Notes: generated from the sequence alone by a model not told the origin. A DNA stretch of 64,000 nucleotides from Chlorokybus atmophyticus (GCA_009103225.1 RHPI01000260.1:754203-818202); one strand, 5' to 3'. Numbered from the stretch's first letter, positions 3,000 to 48,800 are shown. Translations and numbers: made by a program.

Positions 3000-5505
3000 A
3001 GGCTCATGATAATAGAGTTCTACTACCTTGCTATTGTCAGCATGTCCAATAAGTGTTGCTCCCAGAGATAATCTTGTACAGTAGGACATATAGTTGGCTT
3101 GTTTGTGACGTTGTGCATGCTGTATCGGTTGCCCTTGTGTGTATAGAACTTACTCCTATGTAAAAAGATATTTAGAGGTGTTGGGGCGTGCTTCTTATGC
3201 ATGACAAGCACATTGCCATAGCTTAGCAAGTTCAAGATGCTTTGAGTTTGCCTTAAACTAGTTGAGATATAACACGCTCAGATGTGTTGCTTAAGTCATC
3301 AAAAGCGTATCATATCGTGCATAAACGCAAACTCTGCCTCAACTGCAAGTAGCTTGCACATAGTGTCAACTGATATAGTATATCTTGAAAATGACAAATT
3401 GCAGTTGATTACATTGAAAGTTAGCATAACGTTGCACCAAAAGTGTCCCCCCGGATCTAGCTACACGCCATGATCGTTTCTTGGCAATGTCCACTCAGGT
3501 ACCCATTGGAATTGAGTTGTATGCACATATGTTTTTAGCGTGCGACACATCATCACGCAGATGAAAGCCTGGTACCAAATGGATACATGAAGTTCACTCA
3601 GGGAGGCTCAGCCAGGCTGAGCTGTGGCATGGAGCGATCAACAAAGGTGCATCTTACAAGCGCACAACATGTGGCAAGCAATGATGGACAGCACGAGAGT
3701 TGGGACGCTGCTTGGTGCATACCTGCTGATGGCGACAAGGTGAGGCTATGAATCTCACAAGTATACCGCACTGCCTCTTGTCACACAACCAAAGAGTGTT
3801 ATTAATGTAATAGTGTGAAGTGCCAACATGTTTGTACGCGTTCTTGCATGCATGGGTGCGTGCATTCTTGTGTGTTCATGTGTATTCAAGCAGATGTGCA
3901 TTGCTCACTCATTGTGATTGATGTTGCGTGTACGCAGAGCCAATCCCGCAACTTGCAGAATATCAGGTGTCACGCATCATCACGGGTACGCTGCAATTGG
4001 GGCGGCCCAGCTAGCAAACTTGCCAAGGAGTGCATCAGGTGAACTGCGCGAGGCGTTTGTCGACAAGGCCAGCCTCTTTGTAAACTTGGCAGAGGAGTAA
4101 ACACCAAACACTAGTATGTCCTCAAGTTGGAGAAACGTCAGGCTCACAGATATGTAGCAGTCACGCATGCGTAGAATTGTGCAGTGCTTTTTGCCAGTTT
4201 GCAGATTGACTAGCAGTTGCTTGTTGTGCATGCACGTGTGCATGCAGACAAAGCATGTCAAGGCATGGTGAAGTGTTGTGCACTGGTTTGTGACAATGCA
4301 GTTCGAGCTGTGCAGTATGGGCATGGCAGGTCTAGCAAGTGGTTGTGCGCGTATGTGAGACACCAGGTATCGGAGCAACATGGATGGGTAAACAATAGAC
4401 TAACTACTGTTCCACCTGGGAGTGTAGGAGTCTTGTTCGTGACAAGGACACCTTTCACGTGCTTGCAAGCAAAGTGCACTGCCTCCTGGTGCGCGTGCAC
4501 TAATGCGTTGCACGGGTACACTCCCTGCATAAGGCTACGGAATGTGGACGCTTGATGGCTTGTGCATAAGCCAACACCTTGCTGGTTGTTGCAGCATTGA
4601 TGTGTGCACTTGAGCATGCATAGTACATGCAGTTATGCAAGTACGATGAGAACATAGCATGCAGGCAGCAATAATTATCACGTTGACCACAGGGCTCAAT
4701 TACTCTACCGCCTAAGTCAACACCAACTTCTTAAACTCTATTATTATGGACATAACACCACCAACACTACCAACCCGTTAGACATGCAGGCATGCATGAC
4801 ACGCAGTCGTAATCACCTGCCCAAGCGGGCTCTTGTTATGGTGTGAAGTGGAGCAGGTTGCATGCTTTTGGTTGCTGAGTGCATGTAACCTGACCCTTCA
4901 GATGAGGGGTGCCAGCGCATAGGGATAAGTTATCACAGGTTGAAACGCATATATACTCAGCTGGCGCAAGCTTCGGCGCCTGGGGAGAAATTTTGACATA
5001 TTGTCATCTGTGTGCCCTCCAGTCTGCATGTGGTTGCACGACTGGGAGCAGCTGGACCAGAAACACACGTTCGATATTTCCCATGCCAACTAGTCAACTA
5101 CCTGTACACGAATACTGCATGAGAGACAGCTGTGCACAATACAAGAAATGCAACTAGATATGTGGTAGTGGCACAAATGCAGCTGTAAGCAGAGCTTTGG
5201 AGAAGCAGCCAGTCATTGGAACTGACGACCTGGAATTTACTCTACAAGACGACATTGAGAGCCCCACACGATGATGGTTTGTTGTCTTGTTGAACACCTT
5301 TGAGGGAAACATCGTTGTCAAAGCCATGAAGTATAAGCAGATTACGACTAAGGTAGCAAGCAGCACAAGCCAACCAGCCAAAGGCCAACCATCAGCACAT
5401 CTGTTTGCCAATGCCAGTCAGGAACACTGCAAAGTTCAACAGACATGAGCTCTTATTTACAGCTGTTGATCAGACGCAACACAAGCAACCATACCCACAC
5501 ATTCT

Positions 5506-19700: not shown

Positions 19701-21320
19701 GAGTGTGTTTGGCAGTGATGCCAGCATGGGTGCGGCCAAGGTTTTGTAGTGTGGGCTGTTAATTGATACAATGGTTGTATTCTGTTCTAGACATGCTCGA
19801 AGCCCTTTCTGGATGCGTTTTCCGCACTTGAACCCACCCAGGCCTTGATGATGGCACGTGATCCAATCGCCAGTCATGTAGTTGAAGCCTTTCTGCAGGT
19901 AAGAGGGCTTGCGCTAGCTTTCATGTACAAAGAAAGCACAACCCGTTTGTGCACACCGCATGCATCGAGTGTGTCGTCACTGTGCATGCCACTGCAGGGT
20001 CCTGCAGGAGAGAAGCTTAAGAAAAAGTTCATCAGGAAGTTGATAGGCCACTTTGCTGACCTTGGCACTGAAGCTGCTGGCTCACACTGCGTCGAAAAGT
20101 GTTTTGCTTGGGGCGACTTGAAGCTGAAAGAAGCAATTACTGCTGAACTTGTCGCCGGTAGGCAGCTTCATGTGCTCCTCAGCATGCAATGGGACTGTGC
20201 ACCACTTGTACAGCCTTCACTTTATATGGTTCATATGCAGGCCATACAAAACTTGTCAACAGCAAATACGGCCCATTTTTGCTGTCCAAGTGCGGTGTCG
20301 ATCGCTATGCGCATCATCCAGATGAATGGCGTGCGCGCCAAGCAGGCAAAGACAAAGCCCAGAAGGCTTTTGCAGAGCTACTGAACACCAACAAAGCAGA
20401 CAACTACCCTCTAGCAGTCAACGCAAAGAAGCATCCACGCCATGACAACGGCACAGATGATCACACTGAAGACCCTTATCAAAGCAACGAAGTTGGTGAG
20501 GTAACCACTCCAACCACATCCAAATTGAAGAGGGAACCGCAGCCAAAACAGGAGGCCAATGGAGCAGCACAGGAGTCAGCGGATAGGAGTGCTTTGCAGC
20601 CATCAGGCAAAGCAGCAAGCAAGCCTATCCAGAAAGATAGAAACAAAAGCAAGAAGCGAAAGCAGGTTGCAGCCACGTTGGAAGCAATGGCTGACCCGCT
20701 TGTGGACGCTGCGATGTCGCAGCTGGGCTTCACTCTTGCAAAGCATACTGGCAAGAAGAAAGAGACCCACTCGCTTGTGTCTGAACATGAAGACATTGAG
20801 GTCGTCGCTGTGCACCCTCCCATGGAGGTTGGCGACGACGAAATTGATGCGCTTTTTGGTGGTGGCAAGTCTTTGAAGGGCGCTGATAAAAATGCCAAAA
20901 AGCAGGTCGGCTCCCTAATACATGCTATCACTACATTAACATCTGTTCCAGGGTATTGCGTCGTAGTCGTTTAGGTTATGTGTGACCAATGGACAGGTGT
21001 CAAGGACAGGAAAGGACACTGCAGCAGAAATGCTCTTGGTTGACGGAGAGTCATCTCGCAAAGCCAAACGCAAGGCTGATGATGAGGACGAACAGGTCAG
21101 CAGGCGTGCAGCTCTTATTACTGTAATGTATCACAGTGCAAAGTTTACGAGGAACACTAGTCGCTTGTGTGTGCTGTGTTGTAAGCTTGGCACACGTTGC
21201 ACGCAAACTGACTTGCAACCTGAATGGACCTTACAGGTCGCCCGCAAGTCGAAGCTGGACAAAAACAATGTAACACCTAGCACTGCTGGCAGTAAGTCTA
21301 AAACAAGGACCAAGACGTAA
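16751..21320 (+). CDS. NOP9: Nucleolar protein 9 / Pumilio 23 (PUF repeats)
   Basis: Exons read ERAVLCSNALQEAAGKEVQLASDPDCSRIMENL, PCGSRVAEALL, FASHVLRTLL, YGSPVLQ, LALHPTANFVVQSII, RRGGVVAALL, ASHVVEAFL and AGSHCVEKCF, followed by a Lys-rich C-terminal tail. Confidence 0.92.
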
Positions 21321-27790: not shown

Positions 27791-29771
27791 TGGCCCAACT
27801 GCAATAAACACACTAGCAGATGAAGCAACACACATACATGGCATTGCGTCTCAGTACAAAGCTGTTTGATTCAATCAAGGCTTCGAGCTGTAGAAACACT
27901 TCGCTACCCACGAAGTCTGTTACCTGTGCCGCATGCAAGCCGCCGAGTTGAAGTTCGGGCAGCAGCCTTGAGGAGGGTGGTTGCTCAGGAGGGTGGTTGC
28001 TCAGCGGCGCGGTGGGTTTGACAGTGGGTCTCCGTTCAGCGCGTTGAGACAATCAAACCAACTAGGTCTGACTGCGTAAGCGTTGCACGCACCGTCGTCA
28101 CCTGCGTTAGGGTGACAAATGCCTGCTATGTGAGAGATTGACCCCAACGTGGGGCAAGGGCGTGCGGGGAAGTTGCAGTTGCTGCACGATTCAGCATTCA
28201 GCCCCACATCGAACCTCAGCAAACCTTGAAGGTGAGGTGGAATTCAATTGTCTTGTCCATATGCAGGTATGCTCCCCATCTGTGTTACAACACTGCAATA
28301 CTGCAACTTACTTCACGGAGCATGTGTTACCCAACTCGCTTGCTATAACACAACTAGTTGTAACACTATAAAAAGTTCAAGCACGCACCTGAATGCGTTG
28401 CTGCTCCCTACTCCGCTGAGTACTTTGGCAAAGGATTTCGGTCAATGCTGCACAACCGCATCTTGCCTTGTGCCACGGTATGTACGGTATGTTCCCTTGG
28501 TTCGTTTGCGACATATATTACATGTGTTCTTGCCTGTGCGCACTTCGTAGGGTATCATATCGTGGTCGCACCCTGCATGTTACAACCGATGTGAGACCAT
28601 GATACGGAATTCCATATCAAGCACACATGCAATGTCCGCCATAAAGCAATGGAAGAAGAAAATGTAACACCATGTGCAGCTATGCATTTACGCTAAGCTT
28701 GAGACGCTGCCAAAGTATGCAGAGGATCAAAGCGCGGCTACGCATGCAGAAGGACAGCTGTTACTTTACATATGCATGTTTGCATTGTAAAATGCACGAT
28801 GCATTTTGTCCCGTATGTTACAGAAATTTGTTCCAGTCTATATCACAGACGAGTGTCGCAATGCACAGCTCATCAACATTTACGAGTGTGGGCGCAAGGT
28901 CTGTTCATGAAGCCTCGCACTGTGGGGGCCTTCAACCATGCTTATAAGTTTGCAGGATATGCTCTCAACAAATTATCTCGTGCATGCTCAACGCAGGGGT
29001 TGCAGTTGAGGTCAGGTAGTTTCAACTTGTATTAAAGCCTGTATTAAGCAATGTTGTAAATGAACCAAGCAGCAAATGTGCAACATGCGGCTTACTTTAC
29101 CAATTGCAGATTCCATTAGATGTTGTGACCTTCAATTCTTTTTATTGTTGCCGTAACCCCTTTATATATATATGCATGTTATATAATACGACATGTTGGA
29201 CAATAAGCCAAAAGTTTGCAAGCAGTGACTGTCTGAAAGGTTGGCAAATTTGTGTAAATATGCATCTCAAAAAGCGCATGTATCATGCAAATGCCTTAAG
29301 TTATGCGTATTAATTACTGCGAAGAACTTATATACGTTCAACACAATAATTGCGAGCACGTGCCTTTACAATGTTGCTGGAGCACGGCGTGTCCTCTGTT
29401 AAAGTCAATGCCGCTGTTTGCACAGCCGACATCAAGTTTATGAATTTACATGGCATGGCAACCAATTGCCATCTCGCGAGCATTATGCGGGCATCTTTGT
29501 GATAATGCAAAACGCTCCGTTCATTGACTCAATCAAGTGTGATGCATGCTTTCGTAGGTCAACAAACACTTAACCATAAGTATGTTGCAGTCGTGTGTTC
29601 GGCTGACGCTAATGCTGTAACCACCTGTTACCTAAGGTTCAATTTCTACACGGCGTGACAACACCATCACGCTAATGCTTGCTGACTTAGACCGACCATG
29701 CAAGGTTTGATGTACAGAGTAGAAGAGGTGCGTGCGCATGTCCCTCAATGTCCTAGCCAGATCTTCTCAGC

Positions 29772-30943
29772 TTAGGCTTTCTGCACGACGGGAAGGAAGC
29801 ACATGTTAAACTCAATATTCTCTGCACCAACACACAATCTATGCTTCAAACACAAAGCAAAGACTGACCTGGATGGGCAGGAACAACTTGAACTCCGGGG
29901 GCAGCTCCTCCTCAGAATAGAGGCGGTCGGAGAAGTAGATGCGGCGGATGCGGCAGTTGGCATGAATCTGATACACACATTGTATAAGATAAGAACAGTA
30001 CTGCGCACTACAACCCCTGGCACATGCCATGGCAGTTGTCTGCAGAAACCAACCTGGACACGCAGCGTTTCGATGTAGTTGGTGCCGTACGCGCGACGCG
30101 TGAAGTCGCTCAGGTTGAACTGGATCTGGTTCCAGCCCTCATCGAGCCGCATCGGCATGGTGCAGATGAACGGCTTCACACGGGTTGTCGACTGCGGAGA
30201 GGACAGGCACAACATGCATCAGTGAGTAGGTAACTCTCAAAGTCAGCAAGTCAAGCAGCGAGGATAATGCGAGGCTGATACGGAAGACAGCATGTGCTAT
30301 TTACACTACCATCAGCGTTCTATACGAATTGCAAAATGTGTCATTGGAAGCAACACTCACAGAATGGTGTGCCAGAGTTGACTGGAGCACACCCATACAC
30401 ATGCTGCTAATGTTCACACAGTAACACGTCACTTGCCTGGTAGTTGGAGGCGCGGAAGCGGCGGCGCACGCCCTTGTCATCAAGCACCTGGACCTCAAAG
30501 GTGAAGTACTTCTTGAGGTTCTTGATGATCATAACGAGGAAGGGCAGCTTGATGCCAAGGGTCTGCGCGGGGTCGGCCGGGCACGTGATGTAGTTGGTCG
30601 ACACGTTGGTGCCCATCACCTCCAGCACGCTGCTCTGAATGTCCTCGTCCGTTATGCGCTTGATGTGCCCATTTTTGACTGCATGATGTATCACACAATC
30701 AGCCGCAGACAGAGTTTCAATGCCACAACAACATTGCGCAGTGACTGTTATGTGTAATGCGGTGTACGCAGTCTCTCACCCTCTTTGTCCCATATCTGCA
30801 AGGGTTTGCTCCTGCAATGGGTAATACAAGGACTTGTAAGTACAACTGCAAATGCCCAGGTAAGTCTTTCGTTCAATGTGCAACACGTACCCTATGCTGT
30901 ATAGTATGGACAGGAACCCTGACTGGAAGGTATTCTTGAACAT
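29772..30943 (-). CDS. CFAP20: Cilia- and flagella-associated protein 20 (BUG22)
   Basis: [65 protein letters not shown]...[34 protein letters not shown]...[35 protein letters not shown]. Confidence 0.97.
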
Positions 30944-30955
30944 GGTTGTGTCAGT

Positions 30956-31565
30956 TCAAGGCAAGTCCCACTGGGGCTTCCGCACGAAAATGTCGTTGTA
31001 TTCTGGGCGAGCAGTCTGCAAGTTTGAGCATTCAAAGAGACAAGTAAGATCCATGCTTTGTCGTAGTAGAGCAAGAAACTACTACTCAGAGAACTCACAC
31101 ACTGAAAGCAAGACGCACGACCACTTGCAGCCATGAGCAATGCTTCTGCTCGGAATAACAGCACCACGCTATTCTCACTGCCTCTGCTTGTAACCATTGC
31201 TAGTGAGTAGCTGCTACTGCTGTAATGTCATTGCCGCAAATGATGAAATGCTCCACAATTATTGCCAGTAGCTTCTACTGCTGTATTGTCATTGCCACGT
31301 ATGCCCCCACAGTTACGGCTGATATTCTGCTACCAACGCTACCAATGCTCCTGCAGCGACTGTTGCTTTTGCTACAACTTACCAGCGTCCTGAGGAAGAA
31401 CAGCACCGTCAACAAGAGTAGTCCGACCAGTATCTCAAACTCCGCAAACTGCACCAGCCTAAGGAGGGCCGCAACAGGCCAGAGAAGCCCAAACCCTTCT
31501 TGCCCTCCTCCTCCTCCTCCTCCTCCGCCGCCTCCTCCACCTCCGCCCCTGCCTCTACCACGCAT
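30956..31565 (-). CDS. Small (80 aa) Gly-rich single-pass membrane protein directly upstream of CFAP20
   Basis: Exon 1 is 31565-31383 and exon 2 is 31015-30956, joined by a phase-0 GTAAGT...TGCAG intron. The product is MRGRGR(G)15QEGFGLLWPVAALLRLVQFAEFEILVGLLLLTVLFFLRTL-TARPEYNDIFVRKPQWDLP*. Confidence 0.72.
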
Positions 31566-31629
31566 CACACTGGCCTGGACACCGCGGCCCCTGCTACCAC
31601 AAGGCACCGCAGCAGGCTGGAGGGGAGGC

Positions 31630-31870
31630 GGCACGTGGCCTGATCAGGCCAGAATTAGACTAGAAAAACGCCCAGGCCACAACAAACAAACCCTAATCAG
31701 GCTCAGCGTCACGCGTTAGGCATTACGCGTTATGCATCATGCATTGTCATGCATAAAGCTGACGTGACGATCGGCCTGCAATCAACGGCTAAGATGGTAA
31801 TTAGTGTCGCACGCTGTGAGTTATTGCTGCTTGCCTGCGGGCGGGCATCGTTTTGCTAAAGTCACGTGGG
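31630..31870. promoter_or_regulatory. Putative bidirectional promoter with G-boxes and telo-box
   Basis: GGCACGTGGC at 31630-31639, AAACCCTAAT at 31688-31697 and GTCACGTGG at 31861-31869, between divergent ATGs at 31565 and 32011. Confidence 0.5.
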
Positions 31871-32010
31871 AAAAATGGCGGAAATTGGTTAAGAGACAGT
31901 TGAGGCGCTCACAAGTTGAACTTGGGGCAGGCGGTTGTTGACAACGTCAGTGTCGTTGGCGGCGGCGGCGGCGTGCCTGAGGTGGTCGGTGGTGACGTTA
32001 GCTTTCAAAC

Positions 32011-34004
32011 ATGAAGCGCGGAGCCATGCTGGCGCTCGCCGCCTTCGCCTTCTTCGCCCTCGCAGGTAAAGAGAGCTGACTTCATTCTGAAGAGAGGATG
32101 GTGCCTGGTTTGACGTGTTATGCACCATTAGCTAGGTGGCCTTTCATGTTAGGCTTGTGTAATCGGCATCAGGATGAAGCGTATTAGGGCTATTTGGCAC
32201 ACAATGCACTGTTGCTGTGTGCATTAATGCAGTCTGTCCAAACAGTGATGCTGCATCATTGTGCATGCGTCCATCGTGACATTTACCAGAGAACAGATCC
32301 ATCACAGACACAAATAAGCGGCAATGAACAACTGTGCTGCTGTGCAAAATACGGTTTGATCTACTGAATGCAACATGCATCCTACAGATATCAAGCATCA
32401 GAAACCTACCTGACCGTCTGATTGACGAAACTTGCTCCACATTGCTTAATCAATGAATTATCAGCTCTAATTGACTGATTGTGAAAATGTGTTTCGCAGC
32501 GGTTAGTGCAACCGAGCCTCCTCCCCCTCCACCTTTCTCCCCTCCTCCTCCTCCCCCCTCTCCCTCTCCCCCTCCTCCTCCCCCAACATGGGTGCCCGAA
32601 CCCGCTCCCGCACCCGCCCCAAATGGTGAGTTGATAACCTCTTTGTTTGTTCTTGTTATATACTCATGAGCTATTTGATCTGTGTGTACTGATGAGTGAT
32701 TGTGTTGTGTGTTTGCAGCGTCGTGTCCTGATGGGATGATGGTGTGGACCGACGGTGTGAGGTGCGTGTGTCCCTTTGGCTACGAGTACTTCCCTGAGGG
32801 CGACAGCATTTGCAAGGGTGAGAGAGCACAACAGTAAAAACAGTGCATAATGCGCTTTAACAGCTTGTTGCCTTCAACACTATATCTGTATGTGGGCCTG
32901 ATGCTGATGTGTGTGTTGTGGGTGTTGTGTGCACCAGAGCTGGAGTGCCCTGAGGGAACTTCAGTGGCTCAAGACGAGTGGGGCAACTCATTCTGTGCAC
33001 GTAAGTGCCTCATGTTGGGCAAGCATTGCTTAACAATGCATCGCAGATATTCTAAGGAGTCTCTTGACCCAGAGAACTGTGAGACATGCACACGTGCACG
33101 CATAGACACATACATACATACTGAAGTGCATGTCGCCCCATTGCCACATTGCAGAGATGCCTTGCGCGCCCGGCACAGTTCAGATCCCGACTGACACCGG
33201 CTTCACCTGCGGTCCACCTCCCGACTTCAAGGGTAAGCCATCTAAACACACAACCACACACTTACACAATACACATTACCACACACACGTCCACAAAAGC
33301 AAACCTCACCCGACATATGTTGTCTTATGCAGCGACGTGTCCGTCCAATGTGACGGGCTGCGTTGTGGAGAACTGGTGCGAGACGTGCGACGCGAGCTGC
33401 GAGTACTGCCAGGGTCAGTCTCCCATGTGCGGACCCAACGACTGCTTCACGTGCCCCGAGGACGCCGAACTCACGCTCACCGGCAACCCCATGCGCACGG
33501 GATACTGCACGGTTCCAGGTGTGTATTGTTGTGGGGTATTGTATGTAACAGTGGTAGTATCCGTGTACACACTGGTGTCCACAAGAGAGAGATGCTGATA
33601 GACAGGCAGGTCAAGTTGGTATGCTATACTGAAACAACATGCGTGCACATTGCAGTGCCACCGGTGGCCGTGTTCATCCCCACCTGCCAGGAGGTGAGGT
33701 GTTACTGTGGTCTTGTTGTTGTCACTGTTCTTCTAGGATTAGCCGCACCCACCCGCACACCCACATGCACACCCACCCGCACACATGCATACTTGTACGC
33801 GCACACAAGCTGACACTCTCCTTGACGCGTTTCCAGTTCATTTCCGTCCCGAAGAACGCTCAGGCCGGCTTCGCCGACGCCAAGAACGCCCCCAGGCCGC
33901 CCTTCAACGGCGAGATCACCTGCTCCGTGCTGCCGCCTCCCCCGACGGCGGATGCGCCTCCTCCGACGGCGGATGCGCCTCAGGACCACCGCCGTCGCCG
34001 GTAG
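32011..34004 (+). CDS. Secreted Pro-rich/Cys-rich protein (extracellular-matrix glycoprotein-like)
   Basis: Eight exons. Signal peptide MKRGAMLALAAFAFFALAAVSA, an SPPPP-type segment, repeated CPxG...C modules, a furin-like CETCDASCEYC...C...CFTCP segment and a PPTADAP duplication. Confidence 0.8.
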
Positions 34005-45839: not shown

Positions 45840-48800
45840 ATGGAAACAGAACAAGGCGCTCTGGCTCAAATCACCCATCAATACGCTGACATAGCAGAGG
45901 AGGTAAGCATTGTGATTGCCCTTGCTTACCTCCTCTGCTATTCTTACATTGAATGCGAAGACAGCAACCTCACGTTGTTATCAGCAAGCGCAAGCGGGAG
46001 ATCCACATGGAGACAGCGTGACTGTGTCTCTCGAACCATCACATGCAAACATACGCACACCTGATGTCGCTGCAGAGGAGCCGTCGCATATCTGCCACGA
46101 GTGCGGCAAGAGTTTTTGGACCAGAAGGTCCCTGCTGGGGCACCAGATTCATCATCGTAGTGCTTCAATGAAAGGTATGCAATCGTGCCATACTGATTTC
46201 CATTGCATTGCAGCACAGCTAAGTCGTGTGCATTTTGAGTTGCAGATATGGTTGAAAGCAAGAAGCTGAACCGGCTCAAGAAGAAGACAAAGAAATGTCA
46301 GCCACATGCACTGCCACGCTCAGTTCAAGTTGTAGTGATTTGTCACACGAAGAGTTAGTTCTGTTGCAAGTAGTCTGATATTAAACCTTGTTGGCTTGTT
46401 CAGTAACAAGCATTGAAGCTCCCGGCAGCGATGAAGTGCAATCACAGCCGCAAGCAGAACTGCAGCTCGTATTTGCTCAGTCGCAGCCTGAAGCTGAAGA
46501 GCAGAGAGAGCAGACACCTGCGTTGGAGCGAGAGCAGCATCATGATCAGGCAGGCAGTGACAGCTGTCACCAGGCTTCCACAGCTGGTCCATCTCAGCCT
46601 GCACAGCCAACACTGAATGGTAATCAGCATGATATCAAGGATCAGCCCGAAGCTGCTGAGCCACGTAGCAGAGTCAAGAAGCGGAAGATCAAGCCACGCT
46701 CAAACCGTGCACCCGATGGTAGCTGGGTATGCGACATATGCCACGCGCGATTTAGCGACGGACAGTCTCTTGGCGGTCACAAAACTGGCCACCATTATCA
46801 AAGTAAGGCTTGCTGCTTACGCGCACACACGCACGCGTGCGCACGTGCTTACACAACACTTCCCTTCCCTCTTCATTGCATGCCATGCACCCAATACAAA
46901 GCACACATGCACGCACGCTTGCGTGCACACACACACGTTGACTGTCCGCAAGTGAGGCTCACTCCCTCAGCTGCTCACCCACGCGCTCTCTATCTTGCAC
47001 AGGCATGCACGCATGCATGTGGGCACGCACACCAAGTTACTGGATCTGACCTCCATGTGACTGATAGGACGGCAGGCAAAGATGCGTGCCGCGGACATGG
47101 CGACCGTCAACGCAGCAGCGCTATACGCCGTGCAAGGAGGAGGAAATTACGCACCGTCAACTAAACCTACCACAAACGCGATCACGCCAGACACGGCTTT
47201 ACCAACCCAAGCTCAAGTGGCATTGCCCGCCGGGCCTACGAAGCACAAACTGACAGCAACAGCCTCCTTCAGCCACGCAGGAGGACAGCAATCAGAGAAG
47301 GTGGTTCACATCTTGTCACCAAGCGCACCGTTGAACATAAAAGCAGCAGCTAGACTCAGCCCCATCCACGAAGCCCTGCCGACCACTTCTGAAGCTCCTG
47401 TAAACGTTCCCAGCACAGCCTCTTTGGAACGTACTGCACCAAGCCATGCATTTAGGTGAGTGTAGTGTGGACTCAACGATCTCATGCTGTGTCAACTCTT
47501 GTTGCCAAACTGTGTTGCAATTCATCTTACACATGCATGCGCACGCACACGCACACCCACGTGCACAGACATGCACAGGCATGATGGTTACTGCAGTGAG
47601 TCTTTTGCGCAAGCGGAGGCCGCATTGCAGTCACCTGTTGCGAAGCGGCTGCGTCCAACTCGAGTCGCGAAGAGGTTCCCTGAAGACTCGCTGGCTGCTG
47701 CTTCGCATGCGTCAAAGAAAAGGTTGAAAAGATCCAAAGCCAGTGTCAACACGCGCCAAAACTCCTCAAAGCACTCACGGTACCAACAGATGCTCCGTGG
47801 CCAAGGCAGTTCAACCACGTTGTAACTCAGCACACGTTGTTCACATGCTGGCAGGCTGGTTCGCGAGAGAAAAGCAACAAACGTCAACAACAGTCCTTCC
47901 AATGGCGTGCAAGGCGATAGAAGCTTTGCAGCCCGCAGAAGCGTCGCGCACTCTGCCAGTAGATCCATCGCACAGACTGCTGCATCAACAGCGTTTGTGG
48001 ACTCCACTTACGATGAACAAGACTTGCTGCCTGGCAGCGCCATGGCTGTCATCCCCGAAGGTGAGAACACTCTCAAGGATGTGTATCCACAACTGTTAAG
48101 TCACTTGTAACTCACGCTCGGCGAGTCTCCCTTTGTCAGCGCTCACTCGAACGACAGTGACGCCAGCTGGCGATGATATTGACAGCATGGGCACACTTTC
48201 CGACTCCGACTGCGACACGTACACTGAGTACCTGAAGGGTTCAGAGACTGCCGCCAGCGTGCATGTGCTCACACCGCCACAAGCAACTGCGACCGTGACG
48301 GTGAGTTTGTTGCATCTGTGCATGCCAGTGACAGGATGAAGATTGTAACAGTCATAGTGTTGCACACGCAGCCAAGGCGCAGTCCTGCTAGACTGCCTGG
48401 AAGCCTGCCAGCTGGATGGATAAGGCTATTGGCGCAGCGCAACGATGGTGAAGGGTATGGCAACACTGCTGAGAACTGGCATTGTCACAAGTCCAGTGGA
48501 TTTCTTGTCCTGTGATCAACAACTCTCATCGTCAACCTCATGCTCTGTGTTCTGCAGCATCTATGCTGTGTGCTATCGCACGCCCTGCGGCTGCCTGCTC
48601 TGGTCTCAGCAAGATATGAAAAACTTCCTTCTGACCAAAGCTGGCGACACTGACTATTGGCATGTGACACCTCTGCAGGTTCATTACACGTGATGTTGTG
48701 TGCTGTTCCGTCTCATCGCCAGCCTGTTGAGCACTCACTGCGTACTTGTTGCACAGTTCTCCTTCAACCTGAACCAACCGCTCGGCATGCCGATGCCAAC

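Follow-up and report, generated by a model that had tools for sequence, protein, structure and literature searches.

A spliced 80-codon ORF and CFAP20 on one assembled mRNA of the streptophyte alga Chlorokybus atmophyticus

The DNA analysed here, hereafter the window, is a stretch of 64,000 nucleotides from Chlorokybus atmophyticus, an alga that belongs, among the streptophytes, to the lineage farthest from land plants. On its minus strand, an ORF of 80 codons, divided into two exons and opened by an ATG at 31565-31563, was read and translated immediately in front of the gene for CFAP20 (Table 1). Its second exon is at the same time the exon from which CFAP20 starts, and the two ORFs are in the identical frame in the window, where the TGA and four sense codons lie between them. 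A sequence-only reading of this stretch had proposed such a two-exon ORF, interrupted by a canonical phase-0 intron and ending 12 nt before the CFAP20 ATG in the same frame and on the same exon; reading and translation reproduced the ORF exactly, and likewise the GT..AG intron and the gap. Elsewhere among the long ORFs of the window, two of 20 have Pfam matches, a NOP9-like PUF repeat at 19845-20381 on the plus strand (E 1e-11) and a C2H2 zinc finger at 46388-47161 on the same strand (E 1e-7).

Table 1. Features of the CFAP20 locus and its surroundings in window coordinates
Feature	Position	Strand	Description and basis
First exon of divergent neighbour gene	31932..32065	+	Separate X1 RNA contig from 31932; ATG at about 32011, signal-peptide-like start
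Leader 5' of upstream ORF	31566..31648	-	About 83 nt, AUG-free; X1 contig ends at 31648, X3 reaches 31639
Upstream ORF, exon 1	31383..31565	-	61 codons including ATG; translation and RNA contigs of 4 runs
(GGN)15 triplet repeat, Gly15	31503..31547	-	Sequence; repeat length varies among lineages
Intron within upstream ORF	31016..31382	-	367 nt, GTAAGT...TTGCAG, phase 0; 31015/31383 joint in 4/4 runs
Upstream ORF, exon 2 portion	30956..31015	-	19 codons and TGA (30958-30956); translation
Inter-ORF spacer	30944..30955	-	12 nt in window; 11 nt in X3 (30955 deleted)
CFAP20 ATG (30943-30941) and first coding segment	30891..30943	-	Exon shared with the end of the upstream ORF
Other CFAP20 exons	30811-30780, 30678-30437, 30191-30054, 29967-29869, 29780-29555	-	RNA joints (30811, 30891 ±1 nt)
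CFAP20 stop TAA, followed by 3' UTR	29774-29772	-	190-aa translation

The 80 amino acids encoded by the upstream ORF comprise an Arg/Gly start, 15 consecutive Gly, a hydrophobic segment at residues 40-63 with a Kyte-Doolittle peak of 2.3, and a tail of 19 residues that ends in Asp-Leu-Pro. The sequence-only reading had recognized the start, the Gly run and the hydrophobic segment correctly, but the tail that it quoted left off the final DLP. Outside the repeat, G+C of the three codon positions is 0.64/0.34/0.69, and the codons chosen (GGA, AGA/AGG, TTT, CCT/CCA, GAA) are opposite to the strong bias of CFAP20. As had been stated, the spliced 255 nt up to the CFAP20 ATG hold the start ATG of the ORF and no second ATG in any frame. 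The first ATG was also said to have the poorer context, and it is indeed GTGATGC against ACCATGT at CFAP20, both being compared with the general gcc(A/G)ccAUGG rather than with a species-specific consensus; the upstream AUG has a purine at -3 and is poor in the remaining context. The upstream TGA is situated 65 nt 5' of the next exon junction. The intron of the upstream ORF harbors at 31206-31303 a 37-nt direct repeat with 86% identity and a spacing of 61 nt, for which no Rfam match was obtained.

How unusual are such an ORF and such a gap? When the 252 nt that follow the start ATG were shuffled, 3.8 ATGs appeared on average and none at all in 1.7% of the trials, and 1.1% of same-strand windows of 252 nt lack an ATG, or 3.2% of those with similar G+C. 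Composition-matched shuffles and window sampling together put the probability of the ATG absence at about 0.01-0.03. An ORF of at least 80 codons from that ATG was produced by 4% of whole-sequence shuffles, and by 10% when the stop-proof Gly repeat was kept fixed. Thus, depletion of ATG is mildly significant and the length of the ORF is unremarkable by chance.

The downstream gene had been identified as CFAP20/BUG22, and this assignment holds: its six exons encode 190 aa with full-length identity of 90-95% to PF05018 (CFA20-domain) proteins from many eukaryotes. The accompanying label of a tubulin-modification/cilia regulator fits less well, since CFAP20 is better described as the inner-junction protein of doublet microtubules (PMC6994238). 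The fourth intron of the transcript (30192-30436), which is the third to interrupt the coding part of CFAP20, has a GC-AG splice site with a GCAAGT donor, and in the RNA contig called X3 the joint of this intron is shifted by 4 nt (30187/30433).

Whether the two ORFs belong to one mRNA was examined with assembled short-read RNA contigs from four runs of two studies, compared over 28800-32400; contigs of this kind are not Iso-Seq and drop rare variants, and minor isoforms may escape them. One run comes from a multi-species study of 2013 and three from 2021 under a single organism label; among these three, one is identical to the window and two, here called X3 and X4, are 90-95% alike. This pattern fits the description from transcriptomes of five cryptic Chlorokybus species, whose splits are estimated at 24 to 76 Ma (PMC8611356). 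In each run, one contig holds the correctly spliced upstream ORF together with all six CFAP20 exons, and all introns are removed from it, including that at 31016-31382. Because the introns are removed, these contigs are RNA assemblies and place the upstream ORF and CFAP20 on one mature transcript; because the upstream ORF ends and CFAP20 starts on the same exon, exon 2, any mRNA with exon 1 is dicistronic. Thus, at the level of assembled RNA, the CFAP20 mRNA of Chlorokybus is dicistronic in structure, and the shared mRNA and the use of the intron, both put forward from the sequence alone, are found in four runs out of four. An alternative transcript form was sought among the four assemblies and none was seen, nor does any contig begin in the intron.

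The contig of the run called X1 stops at 31648, after which Illumina adapter letters follow, and the X3 contig extends to 31639, from which the 5' end of the mRNA is placed near 31648. Since the resulting leader of about 83 nt has no ATG, the AUG that opens the upstream ORF comes first in the mRNA. Compared with its shuffles, this leader shows no better folding (z -1.07), and the region 29000-32500 of the window has no Rfam match. The RNA 5' ends of CFAP20 and of its divergent neighbour are about 283 bp apart (31649-32065), which suggests a bidirectional promoter.

Relatives of the peptide were sought widely. Its 59 non-repeat residues found no match in Pfam except noise at an E-value of 0.15; a word-indexed search of a collection of 5.8 billion protein clusters gave no match among the proteins of 32-103 aa that it covers; the back-translated patterns RTLTARPE and YNDIFVRK matched no metagenome contig; PDB returned nothing significant for the peptide apart from noise of transmembrane helices; and the part encoded by exon 1 had no match in the ESM Atlas. 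The sequence-only reading had noted a resemblance of the motif LT[AS]RPEYNxIxV[RK]KP to small plant membrane proteins; this is not supported, as no relative of that kind came out of Pfam, PDB, the clusters (32-103 aa) or the metagenome contigs. It had further suggested looking for homologues, especially directly 5' of CFAP20/BUG22. For this comparison, CFAP20 loci were gathered with exon 3, with full-length relatives, from metagenome contigs and by look-ups of encoding contigs. At about 100 loci from other eukaryotes, volvocine algae included, there is no similar upstream peptide; a peptide kept across distant species, by which conserved-peptide uORFs are recognized, was thus not seen at these loci. 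Among the transcript-like CFAP20 contigs with a leader of 40-304 nt, 23 of 25 do not have any upstream ATG. We also considered CFAP20 models into which the upstream peptide would have been fused, and rejected them: N-terminally extended CFAP20 proteins show no similarity to it. As far as these searches reach, the peptide appears to have no detectable relatives outside the genus, and the long upstream ORF appears to be peculiar to this lineage.

Several features of other CFAP20 loci came to light on the way. In eight volvocine loci, the 60 nt 5' of the CFAP20 ATG (about 2440-2500) are almost invariant and include at -56 a three-codon uORF, ATG TTT GTG TAG; should this belong to the 5' UTR, a uORF may control CFAP20 in a second lineage of green algae too, the element there being a different one. 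On three G+C-rich, gene-dense eukaryotic contigs (positions 37-354; 3875-4093; 282-500), Met1 of CFAP20 has before it, in the same frame, a conserved stretch, ...G-x-L-[KR]-G-E-L-N-[DE]-E-x-[DE]-[DN]-V-x-W-R-[GA], which has no evident similarity to the Chlorokybus peptide. In the two of these loci that were read, the stretch has no ATG of its own, which suggests an upstream exon or a non-AUG start, by which CFAP20 would be extended at its N-terminus. On six Logan contigs, CFAP20 is called as a protein of 324 aa that the standard code does not give, probably by reason of reassigned stop codons, and these loci were of no use for the comparison.

Comparison within the genus gives a view on the recent history of the upstream ORF. 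In X3, five third-position changes are synonymous (L27, L37, L49, V72 and K74) and three replacements are conservative (L35F, L50F and R73K), and X4 has two synonymous changes and L50F. The X3 changes alter three residues in the frame of the ORF versus six in each of the other frames. The statistics of selection use nine listed substitutions, changes in the repeat or within about 32 nt of the ends of contig pieces not being listed; in a neutral simulation of the 105 coding positions that are visible, at least five synonymous changes among nine have P = 0.13, and at least six have P = 0.03 if CGG->AGG->AAG is counted as one synonymous step. The masked repeat zone, 31495-31561, differs in net length by -9 nt in X3 and +3 nt in X4 according to the coordinates of the contig records, in which the indels themselves are not listed. 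In a GGA repeat, slippage by triplets is the expected mutation whether the repeat is coding or not. No listed difference of X3 touches the start or the stop codon; of its listed single-base deletions, one is in the leader (31620) and one in the spacer (30955), and the ORF, as far as it is visible, has none. In X3, listed differences affect about 6% of those ORF positions that are visible, as compared with about 5-7% in the 5' UTR and 1-4.5% in the CFAP20 exons. Taken together, these comparisons are only weakly suggestive of purifying selection on the upstream peptide within the genus.

How might ribosomes on this mRNA arrive at the second AUG? The leader, the size of the first ORF (ORF1), the spacer, the absence of AUGs and the contexts of the two starts all agree with the bicistronic mRNAs of green algae, and on this ground we infer leaky scanning. 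On the dominant form of the Chlorokybus CFAP20 mRNA, with its AUG-free leader of about 83 nt and then the first AUG of the 80-codon ORF, part of the scanning 43S complexes would start at that AUG and produce a short peptide of single-pass membrane type, while the remaining complexes would scan on through 252 nt devoid of any other AUG and start at that of CFAP20, which is better matched, with A at -3 and CC at -2/-1. In that case the chief role of the upstream ORF would be that of a throttle on CFAP20 synthesis, built into the mRNA. The CFAP20 AUG, 12 nt downstream, would be covered by a ribosome that terminates at Leu-Pro-UGA, and if the Pro-UGA ending made that ribosome pause, the AUG would be occluded. 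Furthermore, because the upstream stop is located 65 nt before a junction, an mRNA on which ORF1 is translated and CFAP20 is not would be marked for nonsense-mediated decay.

We give a probability of roughly one half to this reading, in which the upstream ORF acts by leaky scanning mainly as a throttle on CFAP20 and its peptide is a young, genus-restricted and weakly constrained product. It is favored by the occurrence of both ORFs on one contig in four runs of two studies, two of these runs being 5-10% diverged, and by a leader of about 83 nt, an ORF1 of 243 nt and a spacer of 12 nt, all within the published ranges of chlorophyte bicistrons (PMC11892635). Evidence against an old, conserved protein comes from the searches that found no homologue, from the 23 of 25 other CFAP20 leaders that are AUG-free, from a divergence of X3 resembling that of the UTR, from a codon choice unlike that of CFAP20, and from an N-terminus made of a triplet repeat of polymorphic length. 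On the other side, the purine at -3 means that the upstream AUG is not particularly weak, and the lean toward synonymous and conservative changes, the intact start and stop in X3 and the G+C of codon positions hint at selection on the peptide.

The latter points lead to another reading, that the gene is truly bicistronic and the 80 aa constitute a functional, lineage-specific single-pass membrane microprotein co-expressed with CFAP20; we regard this as possible, at odds clearly below even. The layout is identical to that of high-confidence algal bicistrons, and among chlorophytes the product of ORF1 is frequently a small membrane protein, as at the TOM22 and OST4 loci of Auxenochlorella. Between lineages whose split may date to 24-76 Ma ago (PMC8611356), the net length has changed by multiples of three, no change of start or stop is listed, synonymous and conservative changes are in excess (P 0.03-0.13), and a periodic G+C of codon positions goes with a clean predicted transmembrane segment. 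Against a function, no relative was found beyond the genus, nucleotide divergence of the ORF is no lower than that of the adjoining UTR, a Gly repeat prone to slippage makes up a quarter of the protein, the codon usage departs from that of CFAP20, the statistics come from nine listed substitutions with changes within about 32 nt of piece ends unlisted, and an ORF of this length arises by chance in 4-10% of shuffles. Our estimate that the upstream peptide is a functional microprotein is a minority one.

Instead of leaky scanning, ribosomes that have translated the upstream ORF might get to CFAP20 through termination-coupled reinitiation, which we consider unlikely. Reinitiation rapidly becomes less efficient once an ORF exceeds about 30 codons; since the upstream ORF is long, reinitiation is a minor alternative to leaky scanning, kept as such because the spacer is very short, just 11-12 nt. 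A very short distance between ORFs favors reinitiation, and depletion of AUGs is compatible with it too (PMC11892635), but in Chlorokybus the depletion spans all 252 nt and not solely the vicinity of the stop, and in vivo tests in green algae gave an inverse relation of ORF1 and ORF2, as leaky scanning predicts (PMC11892635). A much smaller chance goes to the idea that the linkage was created by assembly or belongs to a minor isoform, with the principal CFAP20 mRNA starting downstream of the upstream ORF: rare variants are lost from short-read contigs, and such contigs are no proof of a single molecule, but the same structure emerged from four independent assemblies of two studies with at least three sequence variants, a splice junction lies inside the upstream ORF, exon 2 bears both the end of that ORF and the start of CFAP20, and no contig starts in the intron. 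Readthrough or alternative splicing that would give a membrane-anchored, N-terminally extended CFAP20, as the shared frame of the ORFs in the window with the TGA and four sense codons between them might invite, is rejected as next to negligible, since X3 has no base 30955 in the spacer and the shared frame with CFAP20 is therefore not conserved, while the spacer has no AG acceptor for a splicing-made fusion and the same junction is seen in four of four contigs.

Returning to leaky scanning, what would the locus mean? Tentatively, and with less than even odds, Chlorokybus might make a genus-specific, recently born single-pass membrane microprotein and the unrelated, ancient flagellar protein CFAP20 from one nuclear mRNA at a ratio set by leaky scanning. 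If this is true, bicistrons of the chlorophyte type would extend beyond chlorophytes, and a gene as highly conserved as CFAP20 would have acquired a new ORF in its leader. As the CFAP20 leader is AUG-free in most of the eukaryotes examined, the locus could show how a young leader ORF becomes a regulator or a protein. It is moreover a compact natural test case, with an ORF1 of 80 codons devoid of internal AUG, a spacer of 12 nt, and an ORF2 that is highly expressed and easily assayed. In the literature searched, bicistronic nuclear mRNAs are catalogued for chlorophytes, and no such catalogue was found for streptophyte algae. The locus counts as a dicistronic or long-uORF mRNA of an alga, from a lineage for which no such loci were found described, and it is a plausible candidate for the two-protein mRNAs known from green algae. 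Being a single locus with a genus-restricted predicted peptide, it leaves the current understanding unchanged.

With 80 codons and a splice junction, the upstream ORF is longer than most regulatory uORFs. It resembles regulatory uORFs, including the conserved-peptide uORFs of plants (for example PMC2075485), in being an AUG-initiated leader ORF that ends just before the main ORF, and its Pro-stop ending could slow termination and occlude the main AUG; conserved-peptide uORFs are by definition conserved across distant plants, whereas the Chlorokybus peptide is not. The dicistronic stoned and Snapin mRNAs of Drosophila, cited in PMC11892635, likewise have an upstream ORF free of internal AUGs with a non-consensus start and a downstream ORF reached by leaky scanning; they are animal genes, however, both products have known functions, and ORF1 is much longer. 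Within the green lineage, CDC26-TTM3 (Lorenzo-Orts et al., 2019, as described in PMC11892635) is similar in that a short ORF1 precedes an unrelated ORF2 on one mRNA, and its ORF1 stop is also upstream of exon junctions, so that the same interplay with nonsense-mediated decay is expected. According to the same account, CDC26 is anciently conserved and functional and the arrangement is deeply conserved, unlike the genus-restricted peptide of Chlorokybus.

A close parallel is provided by the exclusively bicistronic nuclear loci of chlorophytes, which are recognized by a leader and a spacer that are both short, by a small ORF1 whose start is sub-optimal, and by a scarcity of AUGs ahead of ORF2 (Gallaher et al., 2021, PMC7896298; PMC11892635). 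CFAP20, FAP20 or BUG22 is not mentioned in the main texts of these two papers, nor in the supplements of PMC11892635 that were searched. Weak contexts of ORF1 and scarcity of upstream AUGs have been tied by experiment to leaky scanning in chlorophytes: mutational tests in Auxenochlorella revealed the inverse relation between ORF1 and ORF2, after earlier in vitro support at loci of Chlamydomonas and Chromochloris (PMC11892635). The refined high-confidence set of Chlamydomonas was defined by criteria that include conservation and ribosome-profiling support (PMC11892635). Placed beside that set, the Chlorokybus ORFs are on the same transcript in four assemblies, which as short-read contigs do not prove exclusivity, and the weak context of ORF1 is combined with zero further ATGs in 252 nt. 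As for conservation, the repeat-zone lengths change by multiples of three in X3 and X4 and the X3 changes are mostly synonymous or conservative, the repeat and piece ends being unlisted and no orthologue having been found outside the genus. The Chlorokybus case differs from the chlorophyte ones in its host, a streptophyte alga, and in an ORF1 that has no orthologue outside the genus and is known from sequence and RNA contigs alone. In architecture the resemblance is close: a small ORF1 with the poorer context stands before a larger ORF2 on one mRNA with scarce AUGs, the leader is about 83 nt against a median of 83 nt for Chlamydomonas bicistrons, and the spacer is 12 nt against 14 nt at REX1S-REX1B (PMC7896298; PMC11892635). 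This transcript-verified case in Chlorokybus suggests that the leaky-scanning mechanism of bicistrons is available across the green lineage.
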